Below, piece by piece: positions 54,301 to 62,577 of a stretch of DNA of 64,000 bases (positions are counted from its first letter, which is position 1; each line of letters starts with the position of its first letter). The stretch is from Entomortierella parvispora E1425. Taxonomy: Eukaryota; Fungi; Mortierellomycota. The stretch covers positions 2,666,001 to 2,730,000 of the forward strand of contig BQFW01000002.1 of assembly GCA_020891255.1 (NCBI GenBank), written 5' to 3'. Under the pieces are notes generated by a model. It was not told the DNA's origin, did not search any database, and saw only the letters and a list, made by a program, of their open reading frames with translations. The translations under genes were made by a program, and so were the position numbers.

Positions 54301-55800
54301 GTAGCTTTTCGAGACAACTCACAGCGGGATCGGGACTTTTCCAAAGCGCAAAGCTTCAAAATAACTTTCATGGAAGAGAAGTCCGGCATCTGCGCTTTCT
54401 GAATGATGCTGCCCCTCTCGTTAGCGGAGCACCGGCCCCGCTTGTCTTTGCATCTGGAGGAGAAGACTGTCGTCTGCGAATGTTCCAATGTAAGCCATGT
54501 TCTTGGATGAAGCTGTTATTGCCGGTCGGACTCGCAACTACTAACGCGTTGTATCAATGCTACTAGATATCCCATACAAAACAAAGACATCGAGCACGGC
54601 CTTAAGACCTCTTTGCAACCTTAAGCCCCATCTTGGAGCCGCAATTCGTTGTCTTGAGTGGAGTCACACCGACATGCCGCACACCTACCTTCTGTTCACA
54701 GGAGGTGCAATTGAATCCATGCGAGCATGGCAAGTGACTCTGAGCATTCCTAACAGCTACCAGGTCCAACAAGTGGAGGACTTTAATGGAAATATGGTGC
54801 CAGAGCAAACGCCTCTCTCTCTCGGCTGTCTGGAGCGTGCGCAATGTCCTCATGTCAGCGAGAATTTGGAGACCAGAATCATGGATCTTTCTGTGTTTAC
54901 ACTTCCAACTCAGCCATGCATGCACTTTATTGCTTCGGTTTATTCGGATGCTGCGATCCGAGTGTGGCTCTTTGACGAGGTTGCCAATAGCTTTGTTCTT
55001 GCCATTGACACCTCTTATCATGAGAAGTGCATCCTGCAGGTGGCCCATATCCAGGTTGAGGGTGGCATCATGATGCTGACAGCAGCGACCGACGGCAAGA
55101 TCGCTGTTTGGGACCTGACCTCAGCACTGGACGCGTTCTTAGTCAAGTATCATCTCAGAACCAACAAAACCGTTCAACCGATCCGATCCTTCCCTGGAAA
55201 GAACAAGGCGAAGGTACAAAAGGACTTTGCGCAATCCCTGCGCTCTCCTTTGACTGAGCTGATGATTCACCAATCTGGCGTGAACAGTCTTTCTGCCCGG
55301 AACATGGGACATGGTATTGTGATGGTCGCTTCTGGAGGAGATGACAATGCACTAGTTGTTTCACAGATCCAGGCTTCTTGGGATTCCATTGGTCGGGCTA
55401 TTAAAGTCAAAGCAGCTCGTGTGATTGCCAGGGACAACTTTGCTCACGGATCTGCCATTCAAGGTATGTGGAGGCAGAGTGATTTCGTTCTTTATCCCTT
55501 TATTTTTGCAGGCTGGAGTCCGTTGACTAACTTTCTTTTATCGTGGGTTCTCGTCTTTTGATAGCTGTGGCCATCATTAATGACTACGAGATTGTCTCCA
55601 CAAGTCAAGATCAAATGATTTCCCTGTGGAGCGTGGACTTTACGGAGATTGGTGGCGCCTGTCTTAGCAAGCAAGAATCTCAATTTGTGCATGTGCCAGA
55701 CCCGTCCACTATGGATGTTTTACCATCAGGAAATGGTCAAGACCGCACGGTTGCGATTGCGGGTATCGGCATCCAGACTTTTGTTGTGGATGGCCGCTAA
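51400..55800 (+). CDS. WDR6: WD-repeat protein WDR6/Trm734 (Rtt10), multi-exon
   Basis: PVTALAY...LLSGQGPY, GHEGILFGIRWS...VSDDRTIRVW, FGHSARVWD, GHEGKSAWS, RIMDLSV, HQSGVNSL, VASGGDDNAL, AHGSAIQG, HVPDPSTMD. Confidence 0.88.
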
Positions 55801-56306
55801 TGGGTCCTGTAGAATAAATCAATGAAAAAAACATGGATCTGGGATGTGTGAAGCCTAATTTTTGGTGGCGTCGAGGCGTCGAGCATGTTGGTGCCTGTTT
55901 GTTCTTTTTGCTTTCACAGCAGTTGATCTGCCTTCGATCTCAATGTACTATATCCGTAGTGTTGGCCCCATTGGGACTGCCATGAAGGGTAACTGAGGGT
56001 GCCCACGAGGCGCGGGACAGGAATTCCGACGCAGCTTTTCATTTTTAGAACAGGACCTGCAGATATTCACCGATTCAGTCCAGCAAACATTGCCATCTGG
56101 CTAGGTGTCGCGGTACCACTGCTACAATTGCACTGTCCACCCAAGGACATGCGGCAATGACCCAGGATTGAAAGATGCGAAGAAGGCGAGAGTGCAGGCG
56201 ATGGGGGCGGAAGTGAAGGCTGGAGGTGTGGCCACTGAGTTAAGGACGAGGCACTGGGACTCTGTGACGTGCGAATTTGGACGGCCAGTGCTCTTCGTCC
56301 TTTTGT

Positions 56307-56315
56307 CCATCCTCC
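56307..56315. repeat. Left 9-bp target-site duplication CCATCCTCC
   Basis: Identical to 62569-62577 and directly abuts the TIR. Confidence 0.95.
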
Positions 56316-56869
56316 TAGTCTCGTCACCATCCCCTCCGCCGGTTCACAGGAGAGTCACAAGTGCTGACGCACCTGCCTTTTTAGGCAGCTCTCACTGAAA
56401 ACCTCTAGAGGGGCTGGTCGGCAAGTAAGGTTTCCACTATGACCCTGCAGAGCTCTGTCAAAAAAATAACGGCAAAGTCGAAAAACAGCTCAGTTTTGCT
56501 CATCCTCCCTTCATCATTCACCTCATCTCGCACCATTAATCTATGGTCGCCTTGCCATTCCACTCCCATTCCCCTCCCATTCCCCTGTTTCCATCGCAAT
56601 CTTCCACTCTCAGTGCGTTCTCGCTCTCTTGACGACCTTCATACAAAGCGCCTCCGCCGTTCCCCGTCTCTCAGGTTATTTGTTTTCGCTGAGAAAAGTG
56701 CTCCAGGTACGCCTTCATGGACACGAATATATGAACTAGCACGCTCTGGCCATGGAAACTAACAGCTATTCCCTCTTCTACACCAAAAGCCCAGTCCTCA
56801 ATTGATCCCCCCCGCTCTTCAATTGATCCCTCCGTCCTCATATCCCGTCCAATTGGTATCACGCTAGTA
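56316..56869 (+). repeat. Left terminal inverted repeat (554 bp)
   Basis: Reverse complement of 62015-62568. Mirror ORFs are identical (56439-56762 versus 62122-62445; 56405-56599 versus 62285-62479). Confidence 0.95.
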
Positions 56870-58903
56870 TGCCTCCTTTGTCTGATACTGATCGCGTCAT
56901 AAGTGTCTGCGAAGACAAACTCGGCGTCATCCCCAAGCCCGAGCAATTGGACGTTCTCCGATCCATTATTGATCGGAGAGATTGCGTCTTAATTGCCCCC
57001 CACAGGTTGGGGAAAAACTCTGGCCTTCACTCTTCCACTATTTCTGTGGAGTGACGCTGCCATCCTTGTAATAACACCTCTTAAGGCTCTTGGCATCGAA
57101 CAAAGAGACAAGCTCAAGAATCTCAACATCGAATGTGTCAGTATCACGGAGGATGATAAGGATATCAACGCCTCCAAAGTCCTCCAAGGTGGATATCGGG
57201 CAATTTTTCTATCTCCAGAGATGCTTCTTGAATCCAAACGATTAAAGGGTCTTTGGGAAAACAGCAAATGGGCTGAAAGCATACGCGCTGTTGTTGTTGA
57301 TGAAGCCCATTGCATCCACGCCTGGGGATCGTCATTTCGCCACGCTTTTGGGGAGCTTGCTAAGTTGCGCTACAGGCTAAACAATCGAGCACCTTTCATA
57401 GCTGCCTCGGCTACACTTCCCAGATCAATTTTGAAGACTACAATACTATCACTGGACATGATGAACCCGACTATCATCAACATCGGTAACGATCGACCCA
57501 ATATCATGTACAAGGTCACTTCATTTAAGGAGGCCGTATCATCATTTAAAGATCTCCTTTTCTTGAAGGACAAGGCCAAGACCATCGTTTATTTCGACAA
57601 CCGGGATTTAGCAGAGCAAGCTGGACACCTTCTACGCACTTGGTTCGGCCAAGAACAAGTTCGGGTGTATCATGGTTTCAAAACCGATGATCTCAAGAAT
57701 CGTCGCATGAAGGAGTTCCGTGAAGGCAAATATCCTATTTTGCTAGCAACGGAAGCCGCAGGTATGGGATGTGACATTAGGGATATCGCTCGTGTTGTCC
57801 AGTATGGCTACCCTCGGGATATAAATTGTCTTTTTCAGCGATTTGGACGAGCTGCAAGGGACGGCACAATCCAAGGATACGGTATATTTTTGGTCCCAAA
57901 ATCGGCACCAAAAGTTACCCCCAAAAAAAAAAGATCCCGTTCAGCAAGATCTTAAAGACCTTATTGACCTAGCGAACTCTCCTGGATGTATCCGAAAGTA
58001 TTTTAACGATTACTACGGGAACGAGCACGTCCCAGTTACGGACGTGTGCTGCAATATCTGCAATCCGGATGAAGCTGATGACAAGGACGAGTCGTCAACA
58101 ATTCAGCCAGCAGACAAGGCATCGAAACGAGAGAAATGGGATAAGAATGAGGCGGAACAAGTCCGGAATGCGCTGATAGTATGGAGGGATAATATGTATG
58201 ACTTGCACTTTAAGGGCCGCATGCACGACACAGAACAAACGGTCATGACCGACTACATGTTAAACAAGACCGTCAAGAAGTACAAGAGTATAATTGCTGC
58301 CAGATCAATCGACATGCTATACTGGGACCCACTGAATGAAACATATCCAAGCCAGGTGCTAGAGATCATCATGGGTTTGGGCAAGCAATTCTTGGAGGAG
58401 AAGGACGAGAAGGAAAAAAAAATCGCCAAGAAAAGGAGCGACGGCGGCAATTTGGAATGGCCCCATCTTTTCAAATTCCTCCTTTGATCAGTGCCACAAC
58501 GGATCAGCAGGAAATGCAAGTCGTTTCCACAGCCAGTCGCGACCAGCAACAGTCAGACCAACTAATAAGTGAAGATGAAATGGAGATTCATTCGCTGCAG
58601 GACGGCTATGGCCAGCGGCAGATTGATCAAAACCTTCCACCGCAACAAGTCAAGGAAAGCAAAAATCTCACGCAATTGCTGCTTAAACCCCCGAAAACAC
58701 CTCCAAAAAAAACGAAGGCGATACGAAAAAAGGGAGGAACAGCAACAGAGAACAACCCTTCGTCTAAACAAAAGGAACTCAAGGTAATCCAATATTTTCT
58801 TCCGCCATCACCACAGAGAAGCAATCAAGTTCAAGACAATACTTCCACGCCTCCTACAATATCAATTATTCAACATTTCGGCCCCTCTGCTCTGAAGCGG
58901 TGA
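56869..58903 (+). pseudogene. Transposon-encoded RecQ-like SF2 helicase, interrupted by three homopolymer frameshifts (may be assembly error)
   Basis: APTGWGKT, VVDEAHCI, SAT, ATEAAGMGCD, QRFGRAARD, Zn-binding CIRKYF...CCNIC and an HRDC-like RNALIVWRD. Frame breaks at C6 (~56996-57001), A10 (57923-57932) and A9 (58414-58422). Confidence 0.85.
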
Positions 58904-59484
58904 CAACTATAACAGCACTTCAAATAGAAATAAAAAAACCTCGCTCATGAAAGTCGAGGAGGTGGAGGTATACTACCGGCAGCCTGCACAAACGTTGCAG
59001 TTGGGCAAGGGGACTGGGACTGGGCGAAAAAGAGAACCGGTGCACTGCGTCTCTCAAAAGAAAAAAAGCCAGTGCGCCGAACTGGTTCACTGCTCTCACT
59101 CAATTTTTTTTCTTCATTTTTTCCCTGGACCAATTTATTGAGGCTGAGAAGGGTCGAAACAAGAAAACAGAGACCTCAAAGAGTAGTATGAGAAAACAAT
59201 GTCACCAACACCAGTGACATCCCTTGGAGGATTGGAAGCAAAAGAGAGGAGAGGGATCTGTATTTCAGCTCAGGCTGCGTACGATCAAAGCAATGGACCG
59301 AGAAAAATTTCCGGAAAAAAAAAATCACTAGAACCACGGTTCCAAAAATGTGCGCCGACCTCGAAAAAAAATGAGAACCGAAGTACACCACAGAGTGGTC
59401 CCAATCCAATGGACAGATACTTGTCGGCAGGGGCGCCGTGTGGCTCTGCGGTTAGATGTACATTGCAGGGAGGTGCTGCTTTAT

Positions 59485-61911
59485 TTAACAAAAGTTATTT
59501 TCAACGAACTCGTCCAGGTCGAATTGTGAGATGTCGAATTCAGGAAACTCTAGTGCTTCATCATCAGCAATTGTAGGGCGTTCCTCGTCCATCTCAGCAT
59601 CTTCCTCCTCCTCCTCCATCTCGACATCCATCTCACCAGCGTCTTCATTACAATAGCGACCACAGCATTTCTTGAAAACAGCAATTCGACGCTTATCTAC
59701 AATATTATTGCGTCCCTCTGCCAAAAGATCTCTCACAGCAGGAACCACAAGATCAGGAGATATATCGTCATGCGTGAAAAAGCCAGCCTCGATGCACCGC
59801 TGCTTAATTATATCGATGTCCGCCACAGAGGATGGAGCTGAGTGGTTGGTTCCACAATGAGGCGTTTTGAACATTTTCTCGACCGTCCTCGCAATCTCCT
59901 GGAACGTGCGAACGTTTGGCGCAATTTTTTTCTCTAAAATACCCCAGTTCAGATTGCTGGACTTTGCCGCGTGTCTGATTTTTGTAAGAAGATTGTTGTG
60001 CTCTTGATAAAGGTCGGTGGGTATCCATCTGTTTGGTTGTCCAGTAGTATTAACTAGCATCGAGGATAATATGGTATTCCTATCCTCTGTCTTCCAAGAA
60101 TAAAAGAGGCCACAGTGAAGTCGTAGAAGCTCATTTGCGTAGTTTCTATTGCCTCCAGCTTGAAAGGTCAAGGTAAGCCATCGGATCATCTCCAGAATTC
60201 GCCCTATATCCCCTGCTTTGATCGCTGATCCCAGCTCAATGTAGAACAGCATGTCCCGAATGAACAACGCGGCGTTGACTGACTGCTGATTTGCCATGCC
60301 ACCAAGGCCTGTTGCTGTCAAATATTGGCCGATGATACCGTCAACCTTATCCATGACATCCATTGATGAGTGAGGCATCTGTCCGGAGGACTTGCTGGAC
60401 AATTCCTCTTCACTCTTGAGCTTGATTTCCCAAATGAGCAAGACTATGGCATCAAAAACATGGCGAAGAAATTCATCAAGATCATGGAAACTAGACTTGT
60501 CTGGGCTGATCCGCTTTTTTTCCAAGGCCGCGACGAAGGAGCTGAGCGATCCAGGTGTTGTTCGAGTGCCCCAGTGCGTCTTCAAAATTGTTGATGCCAG
60601 AACCATCTGAAGATGAAAAAGTTGAAGGACAGGGATTGCCCATTCCACACGGTAGTACGCCAAGTCCTCATCCCATCGTAATCTTGCTACACTTCGTATT
60701 CTGGCCAAGGTGAGTTGATCTCCTGCAACAACAAGACGCGTCTGATCAAAGAAAGTCTCTGGCGAAAGCTGAAGCACCTTCATGATCTTGTCAAGAATAT
60801 CCCTGTTGCCTTCCACGGTTGACTGGTCAATGTGCATGGATGGAAGTGGGTAAGCTTTGGTTCTCTCCACTTTGAGTTTGTTCTTGACTGGCTCAGGAAT
60901 AGGGTTTTTGAGAGATATGGTTCCTCGTCTTCGCAGCGCCTCAATCAGATGATAACGGTATGTTTCCTTCAAATGACTGTCCTGTTCTTTGGAGGGGTAC
61001 AAATCGGAGGCACGTATATGCCTCGTGGCATCTTGCACCCCTTCAACAGCAGGCATCTCAGAAGTGAGAATTGCCGTCGCTGTGGCACCATTTTCGAATG
61101 AATCTTTGTTTGTCGTTCTCTGATTGTAGCGCCGAAATGCCATGTTGATGTTATCGTACACAATCATGAACGGTTGTTTCCTGTCCTTCAAAATTGACTG
61201 GATTTTTTCTAAATGTGCCGTGGTCAGATGATCCAAGCCCTCCATAATCCAGTCAAAGCTATTGCTGAGTCCAGCTCTTTGGAGAACACTGACCAACGAC
61301 TTTGTAGCACCCTGGCTATAAAAGTAGAGACTGAAGATACCTTGGAGGAAATTTGCCCGTCTATTCCACGTCCTGAGGACGACACTGGCGACTACAGGGA
61401 CGGCGGGGATTTCTGGTTCGAAAGGTGAAAGCCTCTTGTCGTTTATGAGACCACGCAGCAAGGCTAGGGATATGGGGGCATGCCCCTCCATTTCTCGCAG
61501 GATATTTTCGAGGCGGAACTGTTCCAGAGCTTCCCCGGTTACTGCAGTGGCAGGGAGCCCAATATTCATGGTATGGCTGGCTCGTTCGATTTCTGGCCGT
61601 GCGAACTTCAGCACGAAATCCATGGCAGAAGTCAATAGAGTTTTAGAATGGTCCTTCTTGATGCTGTCCTTCCAGATATCGAAGCAACGGGCGGGGCATC
61701 CATGTGCGAGGAAGTGATCAACTTTTCTTTTCACCACAATGTCATCTGAATTGAGACAGGCTTCAATGAACGAACCAAACGAAAGCCCGCAATCTCTGAT
61801 ATACTCTAGAATAGCAACGAGATTTTTGCCTTGGTCCTCAGAGACAGGCCTCTCCTTTGGTTGTTTGACCCACTGGCTTCGGGGAATGCGACGATGAAGA
61901 GATGTGACCAT
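59485..61911 (-). CDS. Academ/DUF6589-type DDE transposase (808 aa, intact)
   Basis: Uninterrupted ORF with candidate catalytic motifs IVYDNIN, GDQLT, LFHLQM and TDLYQEHNN. Lies inside the TIRs. Confidence 0.85.
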   Translation of the reverse strand: MVTSLHRRIPRSQWVKQPKERPVSEDQGKNLVAILEYIRDCGLSFGSFIEACLNSDDIVVKRKVDHFLAHGCPARCFDIWKDSIKKDHSKTLLTSAMDFVLKFARPEIERASHTMNIGLPATAVTGEALEQFRLENILREMEGHAPISLALLRGLINDKRLSPFEPEIPAVPVVASVVLRTWNRRANFLQGIFSLYFYSQGATKSLVSVLQRAGLSNSFDWIMEGLDHLTTAHLEKIQSILKDRKQPFMIVYDNINMAFRRYNQRTTNKDSFENGATATAILTSEMPAVEGVQDATRHIRASDLYPSKEQDSHLKETYRYHLIEALRRRGTISLKNPIPEPVKNKLKVERTKAYPLPSMHIDQSTVEGNRDILDKIMKVLQLSPETFFDQTRLVVAGDQLTLARIRSVARLRWDEDLAYYRVEWAIPVLQLFHLQMVLASTILKTHWGTRTTPGSLSSFVAALEKKRISPDKSSFHDLDEFLRHVFDAIVLLIWEIKLKSEEELSSKSSGQMPHSSMDVMDKVDGIIGQYLTATGLGGMANQQSVNAALFIRDMLFYIELGSAIKAGDIGRILEMIRWLTLTFQAGGNRNYANELLRLHCGLFYSWKTEDRNTILSSMLVNTTGQPNRWIPTDLYQEHNNLLTKIRHAAKSSNLNWGILEKKIAPNVRTFQEIARTVEKMFKTPHCGTNHSAPSSVADIDIIKQRCIEAGFFTHDDISPDLVVPAVRDLLAEGRNNIVDKRRIAVFKKCCGRYCNEDAGEMDVEMEEEEEDAEMDEERPTIADDEALEFPEFDISQFDLDEFVENNFC

Positions 61912-62014
61912 ATTTTTTATCGTGGGGGGGGGGGGGCTGTCAACAGGACGGGAGAACTGATATCGGCCGTTAGAACAATGATTTTTTCATCAAACGCGAA
62001 AAAATCGCGAACTT

Positions 62015-62568
62015 TACTAGCGTGATACCAATTGGACGGGATATGAGGACGGAGGGATCAATTGAAGAGCGGGGGGGATCAATTGAGGACTGGGCTTTTG
62101 GTGTAGAAGAGGGAATAGCTGTTAGTTTCCATGGCCAGAGCGTGCTAGTTCATATATTCGTGTCCATGAAGGCGTACCTGGAGCACTTTTCTCAGCGAAA
62201 ACAAATAACCTGAGAGACGGGGAACGGCGGAGGCGCTTTGTATGAAGGTCGTCAAGAGAGCGAGAACGCACTGAGAGTGGAAGATTGCGATGGAAACAGG
62301 GGAATGGGAGGGGAATGGGAGTGGAATGGCAAGGCGACCATAGATTAATGGTGCGAGATGAGGTGAATGATGAAGGGAGGATGAGCAAAACTGAGCTGTT
62401 TTTCGACTTTGCCGTTATTTTTTTGACAGAGCTCTGCAGGGTCATAGTGGAAACCTTACTTGCCGACCAGCCCCTCTAGAGGTTTTCAGTGAGAGCTGCC
62501 TAAAAAGGCAGGTGCGTCAGCACTTGTGACTCTCCTGTGAACCGGCGGAGGGGATGGTGACGAGACTA
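62015..62568 (-). repeat. Right terminal inverted repeat (554 bp)
   Basis: Reverse complement of 56316-56869. Ends GGTGACGAGACTA. Confidence 0.95.
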
Positions 62569-62577
62569 CCATCCTCC
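62569..62577. repeat. Right 9-bp target-site duplication CCATCCTCC
   Basis: Identical to 56307-56315. Confidence 0.95.

Follow-up and report, generated by a model that had tools for sequence, protein, structure and literature searches.

The closest described relatives of the element analyzed here are found in the AcademH lineage of the Academ superfamily, which was described by Kojima (2020, Mob DNA 11:15) and is considered here as reported in PMC10045372 and PMC10799480. The target site duplications (TSDs) are 9 or 10 bp long in AcademH and 3 or 4 bp long in AcademX, and the encoded helicase or nuclease has been linked to this difference in TSD length (PMC10045372). AcademH has been reported as a low-copy element in Mucoromycota (PMC10799480), and it has likewise been reported from Basidiomycota, Ascomycota and animals (PMC10045372, PMC10799480). 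Helitron and KolobokH also carry a helicase of their own (PMC10799480). We found no reconstituted Academ element in the literature, in which the role of the helicase is a guess.

The sequence analyzed, hereafter the window, is a stretch of 64,000 nucleotides from the genome of the soil fungus Entomortierella parvispora E1425. At positions 56307-62577, TSDs included, it contains an element of ~6.25 kb that we regard, with a probability of roughly 85%, as a member of an autonomous cut-and-paste DNA transposon family that has multiplied very recently and is of the AcademH type, the label being assigned by architecture and TSD length. The TSD, read directly, is CCATCCTCC on the left (56307-56315) and the same nine letters on the right (62569-62577). 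Between them lie terminal inverted repeats (TIRs) of 554 nt, the left one at 56316-56869 on the + strand (terminus TAGTCTCGTCACCATCC) and the right one at 62015-62568 on the - strand. As suggested in the preliminary description, the element starts with TAG and ends with CTA, and an exact alignment of the two TIRs showed them to be 100% complementary. The junction between the flank and the left TIR is spanned by a single 21-kb Illumina contig with 0 differences.

A count of genomic copies, which had been recommended as a check, revealed seven full-length copies of ~6.25 kb in the E1425 assembly, all with the same TAG...CTA ends and spread over six contigs, with flanks that are all intergenic and mutually unrelated. 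The TSD is a perfect 9 bp in six of the seven copies and 7 bp in the remaining one (L005). Since the six sister copies carry duplications of their own in unrelated flanks (five perfect ones of 9 bp and one of 7 bp), the 9-bp TSD of the window, already noted in the preliminary description, is not a product of chance. All seven copies contain two convergent genes between the TIRs, one for a DUF6589 protein of 808 aa and the other for a RecQ-family helicase of 677 aa. Substitution sites across the seven copies number only five in 6.25 kb, and the 20 indel sites all fall within homopolymers. The short-read depth was 543.9 for the element and 75.9 for the flank, a ratio of 7.2 that agrees with seven copies; the depth of the TIRs was ~1,100. 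With seven copies, five substitution sites and transcription of both genes, the case for a recent insertion is stronger than could be seen from the window alone. A sequencing run of a related strain (X5) contained 12% of the words of a 10-kb stretch and 0 words of the element; nothing in it aligned to 55400-56315, and no empty site was found.

The helicase coding sequence, when read with the homopolymer lengths of the short reads, occupies 56869-58903 on the + strand and encodes 677 aa. The convergent RecQ-like helicase that had been predicted was recovered: the Pfam domains DEAD and Helicase_C were found, with RecQ_Zn_bind below the cut-off (E 0.007-0.025); phmmer searches of the PDB returned WRN, BLM and RecQ at E values of about 1e-28; and the predicted model matched the RecQ core and zinc module of BLM with a Z score of 29.5. 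The structural alignments end at about residue 360 and extend through residues 358-364, and therefore the zinc module is covered. Together with four cysteines (C332, C352, C353 and C356) that are each at least 90% conserved, this bears out the zinc-binding region of the preliminary description. Its HRDC-like region fared less clearly. Residues 384-487 form a confident five-helix domain in the model, and the only named language-model neighbours of this domain are HRDC families, at weak scores of 0.64-0.73; no RQC or HRDC match was obtained in Pfam with the isolated C-terminal piece, even at an E value of 10, and no PDB sequence matched the HRDC-like region. Judged from its model, the helicase probably joins a RecQ core to a zinc module and lacks a winged helix, and its C-terminal five-helix domain may be HRDC-like. 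The C-terminal domain is distributed over fungi, Cnidaria and Mollusca.

As assembled in the window, the helicase gene falls into four frames (56869-57054, 56993-57955, 57843-58487 and 58457-58903). Compared with the short-read contigs, the assembled sequence has one additional base in the C run at 56996-57001, within the Walker A motif, one additional base in the A run at 57922-57931, and one base less at 58413. An Illumina DNA contig and an RNA contig from the same strain (runs X1 and X2) contain the intact 677-aa ORF with no stop, so the repair of the helicase called for in the preliminary description is probably unnecessary. It is conceivable, though unlikely, that the family is as described and that this particular copy is truly helicase-defective, the C6 at 56996-57001 and the A10 at 57922-57931 being real private mutations and the helicase being supplied in trans by sister copies. 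Among the assembled copies, C6 at 56996 is present only in the window, and A10 at 57923 only in the window and in L008; moreover, Logan contigs drop rare variants, and a frameshift private to one copy in seven could exist and be invisible in the contigs of this repeat.

Several observations nevertheless weigh against a defective copy. The genome was assembled from Nanopore reads and then polished with Pilon at default settings (PMC8759367), and all 20 of the 20 indel sites are homopolymeric, as compared with five substitution sites. The assembly is wrong in most copies at two positions: 59962 is T4 in six of the seven assembled copies versus T3 in the short-read majority, and 58413 is A9 in six of the seven versus A10 in the short reads. 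Additionally, the unique flank shows 0 differences from the short reads, whereas the repeat shows five. Because the Illumina and RNA contigs contradict the Nanopore assembly at further homopolymers, the breaks in the helicase of the window are most likely polishing errors, that is, Nanopore homopolymer errors beyond the reach of Pilon in a seven-copy repeat.

The same type of error accounts for two other features that we considered and rejected. The transposase gene appears broken in copy 2, which has T4 at 59962; the Illumina contigs, from DNA as well as from RNA, have T3, and the break is therefore in the assembly and not in the family. Concerted evolution of the two TIRs was suggested by the mirrored sites 56807 and 62071, which (left/right) are C6/G6 in copy 2, C7/G7 in the window and C7/G6 in L007, giving a mixed pattern over the seven copies; the short-read majority at this homopolymer is C7 versus an assembly majority of C6, and the idea was discarded as a homopolymer artefact. 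Owing to homopolymer errors, the public annotation is damaged in all seven copies, the helicase models being cut short to 481-538 aa and those of the transposase to 532-780 aa, and surveys built on it would wrongly rate the family as decayed.

The transposase coding sequence is located at 59485-61911 on the - strand and encodes 808 aa. Its ORF has no internal stop, in agreement with the intact transposase reported previously, and DUF6589 (E 6e-100) was the sole Pfam family matched at a cut-off of E <= 0.01; the searches yielded no MULE, SWIM, hAT or THAP match. The proposed D, D, H and E motifs held up in an alignment of 47 sequences, in which D253 (YDNIN) and D398 (GDQLT) are invariant and conservation reaches at least 90% at H433 (LFH) and E637 (QEHNN). 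In the AF2 model (pLDDT 83.9), D253 is placed on beta-1, D398 just past beta-4, and E637 on a helix beyond an insertion. With Foldseek alone, no PDB structure matched the transposase significantly (best E 0.014); a subsequent re-examination with VIA-align told DDE transposases apart from other structures, and the top structural matches were all DDE transposases (Hermes, P element, Tn5, ISCth4, Transib and RAG1). The Z scores for residues 212-675 were 11.9 with Hermes and 10.2 with the P element, and that with the IS256-type ISCth4, a solved relative of Mutator, was 7.3. Based on the model, the DUF6589 protein is probably an RNase-H-like DDE transposase with D253, D398 and E637 as a candidate triad and a large all-helical insertion. 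DUF6589 is represented by clusters in Basidiomycota, Mucoromycota, Cnidaria and Mollusca, and the mention of DUF6589 that we found in the literature does not link it to Academ.

Taken together, the DUF6589 DDE transposase, the RecQ-related helicase within the element, the long TIRs and the 9-bp TSDs all fit the AcademH-type reading of the preliminary description. The E. parvispora family and AcademH have in common that a single element bounded by TIRs encodes a DDE transposase together with a RecQ-related helicase, and they share a 9-10-bp TSD and a low copy number; none of the features tested differs. What the family adds is perfect 554-nt TIRs with a spliced leader, ends of the type TAGTCTCG..CCATCC, and seven near-identical transcribed copies. 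By architecture and TSD length, we therefore classify it as a new and very young addition to the AcademH kind, which has already been described. AcademX presumably shares the transposase superfamily, but it has a 3-4-bp TSD and a nuclease in place of the helicase (PMC10045372), whereas the element studied here has 9 bp and a helicase. An XPG domain was found neither in the element nor in eight long DUF6589 proteins. hAT and P elements have 8-bp TSDs and no encoded helicase. The likeness of the transposase model to Hermes and the P element is one of fold and not of membership, as the sequence identity is 8-11% and Pfam hAT and THAP matches are lacking. Helitrons carry a Pif1-type SF1 helicase fused to an HUH nuclease and lack both TIRs and TSDs, and Kolobok elements have TTAA TSDs; the E. 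parvispora element differs from both Helitron and KolobokH in combining an SF2 RecQ-type helicase with a DDE transposase and a 9-bp TSD.

Mutator-like elements deserve separate consideration, since their TSDs measure 9-10 bp and their TIRs often extend over several hundred bp, which are the traits in which they resemble the present element. Moreover, the Academ assignment was made here by architecture and TSD length. Nevertheless, we consider it quite improbable that the element belongs to another superfamily of this sort that has captured a host RecQ gene. The transposase has no MULE or SWIM domain, DUF6589 being its sole family; its similarity to ISCth4 is below that to the P element and to Hermes; and, to our knowledge, MULEs have no RecQ helicase of their own. 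In addition, a recent capture of the helicase is contradicted by its association with the transposase in other genera, where the pairing and orientation of the two genes recur at 40-70% protein identity, and by a database protein in which DUF6589 is fused to DEAD and Helicase_C. Finally, DUF6589 and the C-terminal domain of the helicase are both found in fungi, Cnidaria and Mollusca, as is said of AcademH.

Other Mortierellaceae contain relatives with the same architecture and with TAG.CTCG..CCATCC termini. The 17-nt terminus is identical in M. claussenii (L002) and similar in Gamsiella (L004), and a metagenome contig (L003) shares the convergent gene pair, as does Gamsiella. The TIRs of the Gamsiella relatives, 538 and 681 nt long, match perfectly (100%) and have TAGGCTCG..CCATCC ends, and a TSD of about 9 bp was observed there. 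There is practically no chance that the locus is instead an immobile host gene pair, segmentally duplicated or domesticated within an inverted duplication, for although both genes are expressed, the seven copies on six contigs are cut exactly at TAG and CTA and have their own target duplications in unrelated flanks.

A three-way alignment with the M. claussenii and metagenome sequences revealed a terminal block kept between species, at 56316-56440 on the + strand, which includes the palindrome CTGCCT-TTTT-AGGCAG at 56373-56388. In BLAST comparisons, the first 129-222 nt of the TIR are 76-78% identical to those of the relatives, and the remaining part of the TIR has diverged. On grounds of sequence conservation, we propose the block 56316-56440 as a candidate transposase-binding region.

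Both genes are transcribed, as observed in RNA contigs of run X2. The helicase contig (record 10) consists of the pieces 56316-56704 and 56788-58968, the first of which is a leader exon on the + strand that lies wholly within the TIR. The joint 56704->56788 is confined to the RNA run and defines an intron of 83 nt (56705-56787, + strand), also inside the TIR, with GT..AG borders and a CTAAC branch site. The helicase RNA contig extends 97 nt past the end of the element, and some transcription may thus be read-through and not TIR-driven. The transposase RNA contig is colinear over 59200-61369, reads having been examined up to 61399; this sole assembled transposase transcript has a 2-nt deletion at 60272 that is present in no genomic copy. 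The final base of the left TIR (56869) is the first of the helicase ATG, and the transposase ATG is situated 104 nt inward of the right TIR; in-frame stops are found upstream of both main ATGs, and the leader in the TIR is non-coding for both genes. Given two identical TIRs, both transcripts are probably headed by a common leader and intron; the right TIR is predicted from its sequence to supply them to the transposase mRNA, with the intron at the mirror position 62097-62179. A coding exon shared through the TIRs was also considered and rejected, since the 126-aa ORF of the leader (ATG at 56439) shares its frame with neither main ORF, and stop codons precede both ATGs. M. claussenii shares the N-terminus of this leader ORF as well as a DDLHTKR block.

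The two stop codons are separated by a spacer at 58904-59484 that, according to the contig ends, accommodates the 3' UTRs of both genes: the end of the helicase transcript is near 58968, at an adapter-tagged loose end, and that of the transposase contig is at 59200. Within the spacer, the segment 59010-59365 matches other repeats of the genome, as indicated by extra depth and many loose ends; among the loci examined, it was not found outside the elements. The spacer contains no tRNA and no Rfam family. The only Rfam match was a sub-threshold SNORD57, located inside the transposase coding sequence.

These features suggest a working model of movement. The transposase would bind the conserved terminal ~125 nt, excise the element and integrate it with a 9-bp staggered cut, and the helicase would act as an element-encoded cofactor, probably unwinding or remodelling DNA at the long ends or at a repair step. 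The shared leader and intron would couple the expression of the two genes. More tentatively, it is possible that the family is still active in the laboratory strain E1425, that the identical TIRs serve as mirrored promoter-leader-intron cassettes co-expressing both genes, and that the helicase is an obligatory cofactor of transposition, one that might, for instance, open the long ends or determine the 9-bp stagger.

If this proposal is true, the family would be the first Academ element to allow a direct demonstration of the role of the helicase. Seven near-identical full-length copies with defined ends, the ~125-nt conserved terminal block, and two ORFs that are transcribed and intact in the short-read consensus provide a starting point for such a study. 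Moreover, the host is culturable and not pathogenic, and its DNA, RNA (DRA013164) and Nanopore (DRA010776) data are public. The family is thus a practical, yet unsurprising, candidate for testing how AcademH elements move.

An inverted-repeat search of the window returned one outstanding pair, at 56316-56869 and 62015-62568, whose members are 554 nt long and 100% complementary, and the element delimited by these terminal inverted repeats (TIRs) starts with TAGTCTCG and ends with CGAGACTA. The sequence CCATCCTCC is found immediately outside both ends, at 56307-56315 and 62569-62577. The preliminary description had proposed identical TIRs starting with TAG and ending with CTA, together with a perfect 9-bp target-site duplication (TSD), and both proposals were confirmed. 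It can also be observed that this TSD is similar to the element's own terminus. The copy census was performed by following the 90% cluster of the transposase to gene models at six further loci, all of which were retrieved. Seven copies are present in the Entomortierella parvispora assembly GCA_020891255.1, to which the protein search led, all of them full length (6250-6257 nt) and ending exactly at TAG and CTA, in unrelated flanks on six contigs, with every insertion located between annotated genes. Their TSDs are CCATCCTCC, CATTTTGAA, AAGATTG (7 bp), CGCGATTGT, GGATTTGAT, CCCATTTCC and CGATCGACG. Because seven copies lie in unrelated flanks with their own duplications, the TSD is no coincidence and the element has transposed. 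Substitutions among the seven copies are restricted to five sites, three private to one of the further loci (L001), one private to the right TIR of L001, and one common to L001 and a second further locus, L009; the indels occupy 20 sites, 20/20 of them in homopolymers. The proposed recent insertion is borne out by these few substitutions, and the element is an exceptionally young transposon family.

The seven TSDs display a weak C-N-A-T-T-T bias, with C at position 1 in five, a sample too small for a claim. Some copies lie in transposon-rich neighbourhoods, since a MULE-type transposase gene adjoins copy L006 (L006:13817-16690) and a Ty3/gypsy-type polyprotein gene is found near copy L005 (L005:1-2470). 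The flanking gene of the window (54557-55818) encodes a WD40-repeat protein and is transcribed to a point near 55818, roughly 500 bp short of the insertion.

The transposase is encoded on the minus strand by an uninterrupted ORF of 808 codons (59485-61911) that matches Pfam DUF6589 (E 6e-100) and no other family, so the intact 808-aa protein first proposed is upheld. The motifs YDNIN, GDQLT, LFH and QEHNN, also named at that stage, correspond to D253, D398, H433 and E637; an alignment of 47 sequences shows no variation at D253 and D398 and conservation of at least 90% at H433 and E637. In the AlphaFold model (pLDDT 83.9, pTM 0.81), D253 is located on strand 1 of a five-stranded sheet, D398 right after strand 4, and E637 on a helix that follows an all-helical insertion of 160 residues. 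A Foldseek search with this model gave no significant match. The top ranks obtained with VIA-align were DDE transposases only (Hermes, Z 11.9; P element, 10.2; Tn5, 8.4; ISCth4, 7.3), with Transib and RAG1 at Z of about 6.4 and alignments over residues 212-675. HMMER identified 2,230 relatives among 1.84 billion cluster representatives, and in the ESM Atlas DUF6589 is found in Basidiomycota, Mucoromycota, Cnidaria and Mollusca.

The helicase is encoded on the plus strand, convergent with the transposase gene, by ORF pieces matching Pfam DEAD and Helicase_C, with RecQ_Zn_bind below threshold. In the window as assembled its reading frame is interrupted: Walker A (LIAP | TGWGKT) is split by a C6 run at 56996-57001, and further frameshifts are located at an A10 run (57922-57931) and near 58413. 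The assembly was produced by GridION Nanopore sequencing with SMARTdenovo, Nanopolish and Pilon, and HiSeq DNA and TruSeq RNA libraries exist for the same cured strain (PMC8759367). Two short-read runs of the source sample, X1 and X2, contain the window stretch. X1 behaves as a DNA library, and X2 behaves as an RNA library, as judged by its adapter-tagged ends and GT..AG joints, including one at 55462-55562 that confirms a 101-nt intron of the WD40 gene. A 21-kb X1 contig spans the flank and enters the TIR by 27 nt with zero differences, so the flank-TIR junction is real. The X1 word depth rises from 75.9 in the flank to 543.9 in the interior and about 1,100 in the TIR; relative to the flank these are ratios of 7.2 and 14.5, in line with seven copies that each have two TIRs.

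The interior is a single 5.1-kb X1 contig, whose sole differences from the window are indels in homopolymers: it is shorter by one C at 56996 and by one A at 57923, and longer by one A at both 58413 and 58931 and by one G at 59033. Corrected accordingly, the helicase becomes one ORF of 677 codons, from an ATG at 56869 to a stop at 58903. The X2 helicase contig carries the same four corrections as the X1 contig wherever both overlap. At 58413, six assembled copies have A9 and the short reads A10; at 59962, six have T4, which breaks the transposase, and the short reads and the window have T3. If six of the seven copies truly had these lengths, the read majority would show them; the assembly homopolymers in this repeat are therefore unreliable. 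We therefore consider the helicase frameshifts of the window to be polishing failures, with a probability of roughly 0.8, and the "repaired helicase" assumed in the preliminary description would then be the native one. Short-read contigs drop rare variants, which would hide private helicase mutations of the window copy itself; such mutations are the less probable alternative. In the public annotation, none of the seven copies has a sound gene model: all are cut short or patched by spurious introns (helicase 481-538 aa, transposase 532-780 aa), damage caused by homopolymer errors that the Nanopore assembly left in repeats; other multi-copy genes of GCA_020891255.1 are probably affected likewise.

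Three further features of the X1 data can be mentioned. One contig, whose depth of 83.8 is that of a single copy, connects 56394 with 56713 and omits 318 nt of the TIR, and the outermost 67 nt of the TIR have a depth slightly above two TIRs per copy; the genome may contain a deletion derivative or a solo end. The spacer at 59010-59365 contains short stretches common to other repeats, with extra depth and many loose ends, and has matches at depth 100-600 in a run of an unrelated strain (X5); no likeness to it was found outside the elements in the loci retrieved.

Protein analyses of the helicase were performed with the 636-aa ORF of copy L001, which matches WRN, BLM and bacterial RecQ at E of about 1e-28. 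Its model aligns with RecQ cores through the zinc module (residues 1-360, Z 29.5 with BLM), and four cysteines are conserved, in agreement with the RecQ-like, zinc-binding protein first described. No winged-helix domain was found in this ORF, and disorder is predicted for its last 140 residues. The HRDC-like region also suggested fared less clearly: residues 384-487 form a confident five-helix domain whose named language-model neighbours are all HRDC families, although with weak scores and no Pfam or PDB sequence match.

A 2.7-kb X2 contig covers 56316-56704 and then 56788-58968 at a depth of 65.8, vs 9.9 for the neighbouring gene, and lacks an 83-nt GT..AG intron (56705-56787) with a CTAAC branch site. 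Because this contig joins 56704 to 56788, the helicase mRNA leader is spliced and encoded wholly within the TIR, at whose last base the helicase ATG starts. A second contig, at depth 11.2, is colinear with 59200-61369, the transposase, and the two transcripts do not overlap. Given two identical TIRs, the transposase mRNA should receive the same leader and intron from the right one (mirror position 62097-62179, beyond the 6-kb read layout). The two genes have no common coding exon, and the leader ORF beginning at ATG 56439 is out of frame with both. Spliced over 56439-56868, this ORF has 126 codons from the first ATG and extends across the start of the helicase; a Mortierella claussenii element has the same N-terminus (MT..SSV.KI..KSKNS) and a DDLHTKR.RR block. 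Two readings are possible, a regulatory upstream ORF or a conserved DNA element that happens to be open. A single transposase transcript was assembled, and it lacks 2 nt at 60272, in CGCGGCG, which would shift the frame near codon 546. This deletion is absent from all seven genomic copies and the Illumina DNA contig; it may have arisen at the RNA level or during contig assembly, or may come from a copy missing in the genome assembly. The X2 helicase contig also extends 97 nt past the left end into sequence unlike the window flank, with a direct 21-nt repeat of 56320-56340 located 73 nt upstream. A matching flank was found in none of the assembled copies; the contig may be chimeric, or transcription may have read through from a site missing in the assembly.

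A helicase gene convergent with a DUF6589 gene was also found in a contig from a soil metagenome (L003; proteins of 703 aa and 808 aa, respectively) and in Gamsiella multidivaricata (L004). The Gamsiella stretch L004:7771-20911 holds three related elements nested in one another's termini, one inserted 7 bp from another's end and the third starting right after, a hint that insertion into its own termini, which contain CCATCC, may be a tendency of the family. The TIRs of these elements are perfect (538 and 681 nt), their ends read TAGGCTCG..CCATCC, and a TSD of about 9 bp is present. The M. claussenii element has a 17-nt terminus identical to that of the window element, and its first 222 nt are 78% identical. 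Three species share a conserved stretch formed by the first ~125 nt of the TIR, in which the palindrome CTGCCT-TTTT-AGGCAG lies, and have diverged in the remaining TIR; the conserved stretch is the likely transposase-binding region. In one database protein, DUF6589 is fused to DEAD and Helicase_C. An XPG domain was found neither in the element nor in eight long DUF6589 proteins.

According to a later paper by Kojima (PMC10045372), AcademH elements have TSDs of 9 or 10 bp and AcademX elements of 3 or 4 bp, a difference tied there to the helicase or nuclease, and AcademH elements are described as low-copy in Basidiomycota, Ascomycota and Mucoromycota (PMC10799480). The window element matches the AcademH descriptions in helicase type, TSD length, TIRs and DDE fold and very probably belongs to AcademH, the architecture originally assigned to it. 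A Mutator-like reading was rejected, as the MULE domain of those elements is absent here and the structural ranking stands against it. The kind is already known, and the family is very probably a new, exceptionally young member of it; what is added here is the seven-copy census, the intact and expressed family helicase, the TIR-borne spliced leader and both fold assignments. The public annotation of its copies should be regarded as unreliable, and the family offers a convenient system for a first functional test of an Academ element.
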